DNA of 64,000 nucleotides from Setoptus koraiensis. Its lineage: Eukaryota > Animalia > Arthropoda. Of this stretch, positions 18,958-23,124 are shown in pieces. The position numbers were made by a program, and so were the translations under genes. Below the pieces are notes generated by a model. It did no database searches. It was not told the origin of the DNA and saw nothing but the letters and a program-made list of their open reading frames with translations. Location: NCBI GenBank assembly GCA_048013815.1, contig CM106586.1, forward strand, positions 6,882,001-6,946,000, in the 5' to 3' direction. Position 1 is the first letter of the stretch; every line of letters starts with the position of its first letter.

Positions 18958-20241
18958 CAGCAATCATTAGGAATGTAAACGAGCAGCGGCGGCGGCGGCA
19001 GCAGCCGCTCTCTTGGTCCATTTAAGTTAGAGAGCGCCATTCAATGTGTCTTACGTAACTACTGACATTGGCAAGCTTTGCTAGTTTATGTTGCAACTAA
19101 CACTACAACTGCCATTGCAGCCACTATAGCTGCTACAACTGCTGCCGCCACTACAACTGGCGCGGCCCGCGGCCGTGGTTATACAGACAGAGCATGGTTA
19201 GACGGGCATGGTTAGACGGGCATGGTTAGACGGGGCATGGCGAGTGCTGTGGCAGCAGCAGCAGCGCGATATATAGTGGATGTTGTCGTTGTTGTTGCTC
19301 TTTATTATATCGTCGTCGTCGTCGTCGTATTATCATCATACACAATGATCGAGTGCATCATTGTCGTCATCAACTGTACACAAAAATACACCAGCAACAC
19401 CAGTCTATAACACAAGTTGTAATATACGACACACACACACACACTACGCCACTAGCCATTGTTGTGAATACATCGCAACATCTTTGGCTTTGTTCGTTAG
19501 CTGGCGTTTTATTTTGGCGAAGTATTCGGCCAGTCGTATCACTGCTGCAACTCAATTTTTCTCCCTCTCCCTCTCTCTTTCTCTATCTCTCCCACCCTTG
19601 GTTGCTGTTTGTTTACAGTGTCACCACACAAACAACAACCAATTATTATAATTGATTATATACCGTATTTATCAAACAAATAGTGCTAATACGTACGCAA
19701 ACAGCACTCTATAAACAATAACACACACACACACAATATCATCACAATTATAATCACCTTTGCGCGCCTACCTACACACACACCGACAAACCCGCGACCT
19801 AGGCTACGTGGCGCGTCACGTGTACGCGCAATCATTATTATAATTATTAAAACCATAACACACACTCAACAACATAGCTAATCTTACCACATAATCGTAA
19901 CAACAATAGAAACAACAACATTTCTAATCCATTCATTACTAATGATAATAGTATGATACACACATATGGTCGACATTCAAACAACCGGTATATAATCACA
20001 ATAGCGATGCCAACAACAAAACACTTCAAGTAGTCATAGTGCTTTATTTGAGTGCTACCAAACAAGCTCATGTGACACTCTCCCTGTTTCACTGTTGACT
20101 GTAAATCAACAATGATTACAGCACAATCGACACACCAACCGAAACAATAACAAACAATTCATCAGCCGCCATATTTTCAGCCACTCTATATGATGCCACA
20201 GACATCATTGCATCGCCATAATGATTGTAAACGGCGATTGG

Positions 20242-20247
20242 TCAGTT
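20242..20247 (+). promoter_or_regulatory. Candidate arthropod Initiator (TCAGTT) for the PKI-like gene
   Basis: Matches the Drosophila-type Inr TCAGTY about 30 nt upstream of the ATG at 20278. A 6-mer match only. Confidence 0.3.
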
Positions 20248-20277
20248 TCCATTGAACTCATTTGAACATACTCACAA

Positions 20278-20553
20278 ATGATGTCTGATGCCAATCAAAC
20301 CTCAAATTTAGCAACAACATCTCAACAGCACCAACAACCAGGAACATCACAACAACAACAACAACATCAACAGCAGCAACAACACGAACAAGATCAACTA
20401 CAATCAGGACAAGATAACAACAATGGCCTTCAGGCTAATAGAGGAAGACGAAATGCTCTGACGCCGGAGGTCCATCAAATTGGACCAATCATAGCCACAG
20501 AAATGCAGGTCAAAATGTCCGGTCTTTCACTGGACAATTCCCAAACTAACTAG
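20278..20553 (+). CDS. cAMP-dependent protein kinase inhibitor (PKI)-like small protein, 91 aa
   Basis: GRRNAL pseudosubstrate (PKIA has GRRNAI), followed after exactly 14 residues by MQVKMSGLSL, which matches the PKIA nuclear export signal LALKLAGLDI in hydrophobic register and in K4/G7. Single exon with a polyQ N-terminus. Confidence 0.75.
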   Translation: MMSDANQTSNLATTSQQHQQPGTSQQQQQHQQQQQHEQDQLQSGQDNNNGLQANRGRRNALTPEVHQIGPIIATEMQVKMSGLSLDNSQTN

Positions 20554-20739
20554 TCCTAAAATAATGTAACTATTTAATTACATGAGAAGATTTGTAAACA
20601 CAAAAATATTGATTAAATACAACAAAGATGCATCATTTTTAATAAGAGACAATAATCCAGTAATTTCTCATGTGTGCGTGTGAGTCAGTGGATTGTTCGT
20701 GCCATTCGTGCAATCTATTAATGAGTTTCAACAATTGAT

Positions 20740-23124
20740 TCACCTAACAGGTAAACTGAATCGACTCTTAGGCATACCGATGTCGTTATCTGTTGTTGGA
20801 TTATTATCACGACGTTCAGCCCAGGCCTCCATTGCCAACGAGGAATGATAAGCGACAGGCTGATTGTAGCTCAAAATTTGATCTAATGTTAGCAAGGACA
20901 CTCCGAGTTGATCCTCTCTGGCAAATGGTTGTGCCATTTCTCTTAAAAATCTTTTTGATATATTGACCGCCTCTTCAATACTTAAATTAAGCACGCTGTC
21001 CCGCATATATTCTTGAATCCAGCGCGGTAATTTGCCTCGTTTGTCACTCCTAGAGAAACGTTTGTCCGCAAAACACATTATACCATAGTCTGTCTTACCT
21101 CGCAAAGCTCTCCCGACACATTGAGCGGCATGTCGCATGGCGTCAAATGTGAGAAAATCGTTCTCTCTTATTTGAAATTGGTCTCTCAAATAATCCAAAC
21201 GAGCCTTCAATATCCTAGATTGAGTGTACACATAGGGTATGCCGAACATGATAACACAACGTCCTAAATGGTGATCGAAATCCACTCCTTCAGAAACCTT
21301 ACCTCGAGCAACAGACAATAGGACGGCTCCGCGTCCGTTTTCACATGCTTTGTGGTAATTAGCTAATGCTAAACTAGTCTCATTACTGTCTGTTGTTTCG
21401 ATAAATAAAAGTTTGTGCCTCTGAATTGAATCTATTATTCCTTGTTCGTACCATGTTGTTACAATTTGTTCCATGTAAACATAACTAGTAAAAAAGCAGA
21501 CAATACCATCGGGAACAGATGCAGCCATCTCAATAAGTAAATGACCGTAATTTCTAATAACGGCTAAGTCATTACGAACTTCAAACTGGGACGACATCGA
21601 TACCTGATCATTGCCCTTTGTTACAACCATTGGACAAATACATTGTCGAGCCAGCGTCATGGTGAACGACACTGCGATCACAGGTCGGAAGTCTAGTATT
21701 TTTGGGTACATCGACAAGGGGGAAAGGGTTCCTGACGTGATGATAACCGATGAGAATCTTTCAAAGACTGGTTTAATAGCTATGGAGGCATCCATGCAAC
21801 TGAAATGCATTATGGGATTGGGTATGGTAGGTGCTCGATCATCGAATGGCTCAATAATTAGTGTGAACCCTTTCATATAGGTGCTTATAAGTGTACAAAA
21901 GTTTGATATCAATACAAGTGCAGAAAAATCTGTAACATCGCTAACTTCCAATGTTCTAATAAGAGATCGCAGTCGTTCGGCGCAGAATCTAAGAGGCTTT
22001 CTGTCGATGCAAACCTTATCTTGAATGTCTTTTAAAAAAGCAGCAGGGCTTTCTTGGACAACATGCTGTGTCCTCAGTCTAGTTTTCACATATTCAACAA
22101 GTCTCTTGAGAAAACCAACAAAGTGTTCTGCATTACGTATATTTCCTGGAACTGCTTCTTGTAGAACCTCTGTGGGTAGTACGGGGTTGGACAAAATCAT
22201 ATCGGTTTCTCTAGCTGTGCTGGCTTCTTTTAGTCCTTTCACCAGCCTATCGTATTCTGTCTTAAGTTTAACTTCGTCAACCTGTCTAATACTTCGTATT
22301 GTCTTGGATAGAACGTCTAAACTGGCCTGACTTTTCTCGATGGTCTTTCTAGTAATTGTTACACTCATTGATTCAATACAGACATTGTCGATGTTGTGGG
22401 CCTCATCGAAGACAACAATAGAGTTTCTGGCTAGTTCCTTGGAAACCATGTCAGCAATTTTCGGGTCTAGTAAATAATGATAGCTATAAATGATCACCTT
22501 GGCATATGAGATCGCATGTCGAGCTGTGAAATAAGGGCACCATCCTTTAACGCGCGAAAAATCTTTAAGATCATCAATGGCGTAAACGCCACCAGGTAAT
22601 ATGGCATCTCTACCATGGGCATCATATTCTTCATAGTATACACAAACTTTAGAGCTTGGATCTGCCTTATGTAATGCACGCTTGTGTGATGCTGTCAGAC
22701 TGTAGCAATGGCCATCAACAACTTTACCATCGCGCTCCTTGCTGACATCTGGATGTATGCATAGATTCTTTCGTGAAGACAGACATAGGCCGACAAAATC
22801 CTTGAGACCACTGTCTCGTCCGGTTTTTTGGAATTCTTTATCAATAAAATCGATCAGGTCAGACAGCTCTTTGACTACCTTCTCGATTTCTGGCACAGTA
22901 CGCGAACAATAGATTAGTTTGCTCGCATTGGCCGGATTTTGTATTTGATAGGAAATAATAAGCGCCAATAGTGAGATAGTTTTACCAGTTCCTGAGGGCA
23001 TCTCTAGAAGGCCGTGTCCCTTGGCATCGATGCATTTTTTCAATTCACACATATAATGATACTGCTCCGGGTAGATATAATCATAGGGAAAGTAGACCGT
23101 GAGGCCCTCGATATCGATCTTCAT
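20740..23124 (-). CDS. ERCC2: TFIIH helicase subunit XPD, intronless, 794 aa
   Basis: N-terminus [22 protein letters not shown], Walker [13 protein letters not shown] box (DEAHNID), four Fe-S cysteines (NLCIHP, GHCYSL, KVCVYY, GWCPYF) and C-terminal [17 protein letters not shown]. The stop overlaps a donor-like AG|GTGAAT, so the extreme C-terminus is slightly uncertain. Confidence 0.98.

Follow-up and report, generated by a model that had tools for sequence, protein, structure and literature searches.

The window analysed here, a stretch of 64,000 nucleotides from contig CM106586.1 of Setoptus koraiensis, carries on its forward strand a single-exon open reading frame that runs from ATG to TAG (20278 to 20553, stop included) and encodes a protein of 91 amino acids. 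Translation confirmed that this frame contains the two motifs for which a preliminary description of the same DNA had singled it out as a homologue of the PKA inhibitor (PKI). The protein begins with MMSDANQTSNLATTS (residues 1 to 15), which is followed by a Q-rich low-complexity tract of variable length (residues 16 to 45; 20323 to 20412). The pseudosubstrate module ANRGRRNAL occupies residues 53 to 61 (20434 to 20460), with R57 to A60 aligned to positions 18 to 21 of the Pfam PKI profile; the motif itself had been read correctly, but the coordinates 20440 to 20460 previously given for it cover RGRRNAL only, a slip of 6 nt. In this register, Ala60 is P0, Arg57 and Arg58 are P-3 and P-2, Leu61 is P+1 and Arg55 is P-5, and P-11 is Asn49, as had been stated. 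Next comes a 14-residue linker, TPEVHQIGPIIATE (residues 62 to 75; 20461 to 20502). It ends in E75, directly before an NES-like module, MQVKMSGLSL (residues 76 to 85), found at 20503 to 20532 as first reported. The hydrophobic (Phi) positions of this module are M76, M80, L83 and L85; it is assigned by its family-wide spacing and by alignment to Pfam PKI positions 37 to 46. The spacer between L61 and M76 is thus 14 residues long, and the protein closes with DNSQTN (residues 86 to 91). It is small and largely disordered.

Downstream lies an intron-less gene for the helicase XPD/ERCC2 on the reverse strand (20740 to 23124; 794 aa), with DEAD_2, HBB and Helicase_C_2 domains. The two genes are convergent, tail-to-tail, and 186 nt separate their stop codons. 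The same tail-to-tail layout with XPD was found on L001, the 10-kb contig that encodes a close relative of the protein (P0001), where COX6A follows. On the 5' side, a block of 44 nt (20234 to 20277, forward strand) is conserved with one mismatch across the window, L001 and the locus of a second close relative (L002), and the sequence farther upstream diverges among the three. This block, which reads GGCGATTGG-TCAGTT-TCCATTGAA... and ends directly at the ATG, contains ATTGG, an inverted CCAAT, and after it an initiator-like TCAGTT at 20242 to 20247, and its conservation and motif content suggest a putative core promoter with initiator together with the 5' UTR. At distant loci of the family (L012, L009 and L016), a GGCGCG..(C)AGTTTC.AAA element related to 20234 to 20257 of the window was seen 45 to 80 nt 5' of the ATG, and at some distant loci the upstream element includes an E2F-like GGCGCGC box. 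Beyond the stop codon, a forward-strand ATTAAA at 20612 to 20617 (59 nt past the stop, at the same offset in L001) is a candidate polyadenylation signal.

These two close relatives, P0001 with 83 aa and P0002 with 82 aa, had come from a word-index search for which the 44 C-terminal residues served as query, and the reading frame is open at both of their loci. In a three-way DNA alignment of the window, L001 and L002, the Q-rich tract changes by in-frame insertions and deletions only, the start and stop codons are kept in all three sequences, and the flanks diverge fast. Across the entire ORF, dN/dS lies between 0.05 and 0.10 (Nei-Gojobori). The last 44 codons differ between the window and L001 by 9 synonymous and 0 non-synonymous changes, and 26 of the 38 differences between the window and L002 fall at third codon positions. 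This is a real gene, coding and under purifying selection.

The PKI-like locus is present as a single copy in the genome. A genome search with the Pfam model PF02827 gave no match, missing this locus as well, and no match was obtained in control genomes either, so this search has no bearing on whether the genome also has a second, canonical PKI. With the family profile, a second weak match was seen on the reverse strand at G000:C2:18638332-18638400 (about 1501 to 1569 of L008; 21.3 bits, E 0.009, profile positions 19 to 41). We rejected it as a functional paralogue: it lacks RRNA and has an internal stop. Its matching frame reads ...LMIEPIRTTEIVDRMN and then a stop, and the match may be due to chance or to the remnant of a decayed paralogue.

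None of the public sequencing runs that hold the locus is recorded as RNA. In run X1, which was guessed to be RNA, one specific contig of 232 nt covers 20257 to 20494 at a depth of 2.3, the remaining matches being to CAA repeats; we do not count this contig as evidence of transcription. The CAA/CAG tract at 20323 to 20412 matched thousands of unrelated contigs in every run examined, so polyQ-coding repeats are very common in these genomes. For the same reason, a spike in depth over 20323 to 20469 was rejected as a signal, because these repeats draw thousands of unrelated contigs and the spike is therefore an artefact. Logan contigs of about 1 kb that encode relatives were likewise rejected as mRNAs; since neighbouring genes are present on them, they are genomic.

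We next consider the wider family. Searching 1.84 billion representative proteins with A1, a profile of the three C-terminal modules, gave 27 matches at E<=1e-3, about 20 of them proteins of 61 to 155 aa that matched in one stretch at profile positions of about 10 to 45. A word search with alignment A2 gave 47 matches, and these, together with further members of their 90% clusters, make up the 51 sequences that we analysed; the 43-sequence core of this set forms alignment A3. The relatives are 60 to 156 aa long (median about 85). Approximately 50 homologues conserve both motifs, and all of them come from Logan, ENA or JGI assemblies. In the databases searched, no NCBI or UniRef entry, no name and no precomputed Pfam domain is attached to any of the roughly 50, and the same database includes annotated tick, spider and mite proteomes, as seen in our search for PKA-C. 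The homologue can be called hidden, as it had been, in the sense that no homologue in these databases has a name or a Pfam domain; the assemblies from which the homologues come are unannotated. Their contigs are gene-dense with long intron-less ORFs, and the gene neighbourhoods differ. The clade comprises at least 50 small proteins from compact, gene-dense animal contigs.

Within A3, R57, R58, N59, A60, T62, P63, I71 and E75 are invariant (43/43), and P+1 is L in 38 sequences and I in 5. Conservation reaches at least 90% at E64, P70, Q (A73 in the window), T74, E (V78 in the window), K79 and L83, and lies just below 90% for the consensus Q at position 77 (38/43) and M at position 80 (36/43). 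Across all of the approximately 50 homologues, R-R-N-A-[LI]-T-P-E is invariant or nearly so, and in 49 of 51 members a gap of exactly 14 residues separates RRNA[LI] from the pattern Phi-x3-Phi-x2-Phi-x-Phi. Arg stands at P-6 (N-R-x-G-R-R-N-A) in 17 of the 51 and at P-5 in 13, a difference that the loss of one residue behind a conserved N-R dipeptide could explain. Placement of Arg at P-5 rather than P-6, described earlier, holds for the window (Arg55, with Asn54 at P-6) and is a trait of the window lineage, since 17 of the 51 relatives have Arg at P-6 as in canonical PKI. Many relatives have L-Q-E-Q-C-N-R upstream of the pseudosubstrate, and P-11 is non-aromatic in them. The window lineage is the most divergent of the family, with G69, I72, A73 and V78 against the consensus E, R, Q and E. 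The earlier statement that polyQ replaces the N-terminal helix is right insofar as residues 16 to 45 are Q-rich, but part of the length of the polyQ is peculiar to this genome, since the tract of the closest relative is 8 residues shorter.

PF02827 was the top Pfam match of the window protein. The comparison with this model, proposed at the outset as a check, thus put PKI first, but at 10.1 bits (E 1.1) the score remains below the gathering cutoff of 25 bits. Residues 56 to 88 align to profile positions 17 to 49, and since the alignment spans 33 positions on each side, the spacing is the same as in PKI; together with the family-wide conservation of this spacing, the equal span upholds the view that both modules and the distance between them are those of PKI. 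In a member-by-member scan of the Pfam library (24,736 models; E<=10), PKI was matched by 12 of 23 members and every other family by at most 2. The best members scored 22.8 bits (E 1.2e-4), 20.2 bits and 18.6 bits (to E 2.4e-3) against PF02827, in the same register, and no family member scored reached the 25-bit PKI cutoff. The similarity to PKI is therefore statistically significant, with a best E of 1.2e-4, and formal membership is withheld by scores that all lie below 25 bits. No other Pfam domain was found in the window protein or repeatedly in its relatives.

Language-model features gave weak but independent support for the link to PKI. In the ESM Atlas, PKI clusters rank second and third for the C-terminus of the window protein (0.78), and arthropod PF02827 clusters rank first and third for family member P0035 (0.88; 203 and 188 of 256 features shared); PF02827 is present in 97% and 77% of the members of these two arthropod clusters. 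Searched against PDB sequences, the window protein gave polyQ noise only (Piezo1), and the family profile, in a second search, gave only chance matches (enolase and others) and no PKI. The latter search has little power, because the PKI chains in the PDB are mostly 20-mers or chimeras. When the protein is held against the defining traits of PKI, R57-R58-N59-A60-L61 supplies R-R-N-A-[IL], in which P0 is Ala and so cannot be phosphorylated, and the protein is small (91 aa), free-standing and devoid of other domains. The Arg at P-6 is replaced by Asn54 in the window, and the N-terminal amphipathic helix with Phe at P-11 and Tyr at P-14 is missing, the upstream region being Q/N-rich. From these sequence comparisons we infer that the gene is probably a true homologue of PKI.

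The presumed target, the catalytic subunit of PKA (PKA-C), is encoded in the same genome by five exons at L005 (G000:C1:15093374-15096396, reverse strand), in an otherwise intron-poor genome. It was found with the pattern D-F-G-F-A-K; the pattern T-W-T-L-C-G-T-P-E-Y was discarded as a PKA-C finder because it led to PKG, which lies at L004 (G000:C1:22060505-22063534, reverse strand) as one long ORF with 622 aa within the stretch fetched. The top-scoring PKA-C match in the database, P0058, ranked above all mite records and belongs to an NCBI record labelled as the nematode Ostertagia ostertagi, which may reflect mite contamination of that assembly. For docking we used a full-length database PKA-C, P0064 (351 aa), which starts with MGN, ends in an FxxF tail and is 91% identical to the genome's own PKA-C over the first large exon. 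All 24 of the contact and specificity residues checked are identical in the genome's own PKA-C exons.

The complex was modelled with P0064, ATP, two Mg and residues 46 to 77 of the window protein, alongside three controls. The docking score was 0.86, and the best of the three controls reached 0.02. Of 78 solved complexes, 51 reach the mark for a pass, against 2 of 108 mismatched pairs (39/65 and 2/126 among eukaryotes), in a calibration carried out without small molecules. Between runs, at least 52% of contacts are shared, and the partner pLDDT is at least 49. In the model, the confident interface consists of partner residues 55 to 64 against the Gly-rich loop, the catalytic Asp, Glu170 and the P+1 loop. 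Numbered as in the mammalian enzyme (P0064 numbering is mammalian numbering + 1), modelled Ala60 contacts the catalytic Asp166 and the DFG+1 and DFG+2 residues, Arg58 contacts Glu170 and Glu203, Phe129 is close to Arg57, and the P+1 loop (198 to 203) houses Leu61, with the Gly-rich loop above. This is the textbook pose of a pseudosubstrate. Residues 46 to 54 and 65 to 77 were not confidently placed; the unplaced stretch 46 to 54 agrees with loss of the N-terminal helix and is no measure of affinity. A model of the complex with PKA-C, which the preliminary description had also suggested, therefore yielded canonical docking in the cleft, but since solved PKA-PKI complexes are abundant, the pass may reflect the model's memory of RRNA[IL]. 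What the docking pass shows is the likeness of the model to a PKA-PKI complex, not binding.

On the strength of this model and of the conserved motif, the protein is likely to act as a pseudosubstrate inhibitor of PKA-C; the low affinity ascribed to it earlier is conjecture. In the mechanism that we propose, the segment R55 to E64 would enter the substrate cleft as a pseudosubstrate once cAMP has freed the catalytic subunit of PKA. Ala60 would take the place of the phospho-acceptor, Arg57 and Arg58 would fill the acidic P-3 and P-2 pockets and Leu61 the P+1 pocket, so that catalysis would be blocked. The hydrophobic residues of M76-x3-M80-x2-L83-x-L85 would probably recruit CRM1, leading to export of the complex from the nucleus, as for vertebrate PKI. 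We give the NES-like module an even chance of working as an NES, a call that is made from the consensus and its conservation. In PKI, the NES corresponds to residues 37 to 46, LALKLAGLDI (PMC7723848).

The linker between the two modules is unusually conserved. T62, P63, I71 and E75 vary as little in A3 as RRNA does, and less than the NES positions, and E64, P70 and T74 are nearly invariant. We take T-P and P-I-x-Q-T-E to have no obvious counterpart in PKI; they are not among the residues listed in the preliminary description as shared with PKIA, and the pattern of conservation hints at a role outside the PKI design. Thr62-Pro63, right after the pseudosubstrate at P+2 and P+3, could be a site of proline-directed phosphorylation, and P70-I71...E75 could be a second docking motif. 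One could accordingly imagine a gated PKI, whose inhibition of PKA or exposure of the NES would be turned on and off when a MAPK or CDK phosphorylates Thr62 or a second partner binds the linker; we think this unlikely. If true, a gated PKI would be a node of cross-talk between PKA and proline-directed kinases in these mites that is absent from vertebrate PKIs.

Our preferred reading, to which we assign a probability of about 0.7, is that the gene is a divergent member of the PKI family, a small single gene acting on PKA-C, and it has to be weighed against three others. The most basic is that the ORF arose by chance in non-coding or UTR DNA beside XPD and that its motifs are coincidental. The N-terminal half is indeed low-complexity, no run is recorded as RNA, and the loose two-module motif alone is not rare: in the six-frame translation of a 48.8 Mb genome with the same composition, a stop-free RRNA[LIVM]-x14-Phi-x3-Phi-x2-Phi-x-Phi would turn up about 0.55 times by chance. 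Requiring G, K and G-L as well, which are additional identities to PKI, lowers the expectation to about 1e-5. The decisive point against chance is conservation, the motif positions being invariant or nearly so in about 50 homologues that lie in other genomes and in different gene neighbourhoods. Low dN/dS, third-position bias, a restriction to in-frame indels and retention of the start and stop codons tell in the same direction, and the chance reading is effectively refuted. A different proposal grants the gene but places its main function in T-P and P-I-x-Q-T-E, for example as a docking motif, or one under phospho-control, that serves an unrelated partner, with the PKA-like features secondary or non-functional. 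The invariant linker residues, which match RRNA and exceed the NES positions, would fit such a function, as would the finding that only residues 55 to 64 contact PKA-C confidently in the model. However, all 43 sequences keep RRNA itself, and in none of them does Ser or Thr take the place of Ala, as selection for a non-phosphorylatable pseudosubstrate predicts, and T62 to E64 fall within the modelled interface. We consider a primary function of the linker quite improbable.

A further possibility is that the protein is an independent pseudosubstrate inhibitor or decoy for PKA, or for another basophilic AGC kinase such as the PKG at L004, and that its motifs converged on those of PKI within a disordered protein. 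Short linear motifs such as RRxA-Phi and a hydrophobic NES arise readily in evolution, and Smoothened is reported to have an independent PKI-like decoy motif. The sub-cutoff Pfam scores, the failure of the PDB profile search to return PKI and the invariant yet PKI-unlike linker can all be read in the same way. Convergence would nevertheless have to reproduce a module spacing identical to that of PKI, aligned over equal length in Pfam, as well as the same size class and architecture. It would also leave to coincidence an E of 1.2e-4 against 24,736 models with no rival family, the P-6 Arg that restores R-x-G-R-R-N-A-[IL] in 17 of the 51 sequences, and nearest Atlas neighbours that are arthropod PF02827 clusters. 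We therefore regard convergence as an unlikely origin. PKI is the only family indicated jointly by sequence profiles, language-model features and the controlled docking model, in keeping with the preferred reading of a divergent PKI.

Comparison with known systems shows where the protein agrees with PKI and where it departs from it. Like vertebrate PKI alpha, beta and gamma (PF02827), it is a small protein of the heat-stable type, within or near the size class of about 70 to 90 aa (about 70 to 80 aa in vertebrates), and combines G-R-R-N-A-[IL], with Ala at P0, with a class-1a leucine-rich NES exactly 14 residues past P+1; the E before the NES and the K and G-L within it are also shared. Unlike vertebrate PKI, it scores below the Pfam cutoff, lacks the N-terminal amphipathic helix and the Phe at P-11 and, in the window, has Arg at P-5 instead of P-6. 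In vertebrate PKI, the N-terminal helix with Phe at P-11 is needed for sub-nanomolar affinity. The linker also differs, being an invariant T-P-E-x-H-x-I-x-P-I-x-Q-T-E here in place of what we take to be a variable, Ser-rich linker in PKI. The inhibitor site of the PKA regulatory subunit RI presents a pseudosubstrate, RRxA/G-Phi, in the same cleft of PKA-C; RI, however, is a large cAMP-binding protein that is released by cAMP, and the protein described here has no cNMP-binding domain. In the C-tail of Smoothened, a PKI-like decoy similarly blocks the PKA-C active site with a pseudosubstrate, but it lies within the tail of a GPCR, is phosphorylation-dependent, has no NES and is not free-standing, which makes it an analogue and not a relative.

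Closer to hand are the annotated PKI-domain proteins of arthropods, which share the phylum and the presumed role and, as Atlas neighbours of P0035, were compared by language-model features only. These proteins pass the Pfam PKI threshold and have names, whereas the clade described here does neither. PKI is among the best-studied kinase inhibitors, with work done nearly all on vertebrates, and our literature search found no paper on the biochemistry of invertebrate PKI. The preliminary description had noted that PKIs are characterised mainly in vertebrates. PKI is not new to arthropods, given the arthropod Atlas clusters and a tick PKIB gene named by RefSeq (LOC8025090), which is expressed and has been used as a cell-type marker (PMC13015885). 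Because arthropod PKIs are already annotated, the novelty of the gene is smaller than had been implied.

What is new here is a divergent, sub-threshold and fully unannotated clade, together with its alignment and its invariant linker. It very probably extends the known PKI family and does not constitute a new kind of regulator or a new regulatory principle. Alignment A3 shows which positions are fixed (RRNA, T-P, P-I, E and the Phi spacing) and which are open to change (the N-terminal helix and the Arg at P-6 or P-5), and could help to re-tune the Pfam PKI model and the annotation of short ORFs in arthropod genomes. In addition, the clade offers natural variants for asking how far the affinity of PKI depends on the helix. 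Taken together, our results describe one strongly selected PKI-like gene kept in this clade, of a sort that current family models and annotations miss.
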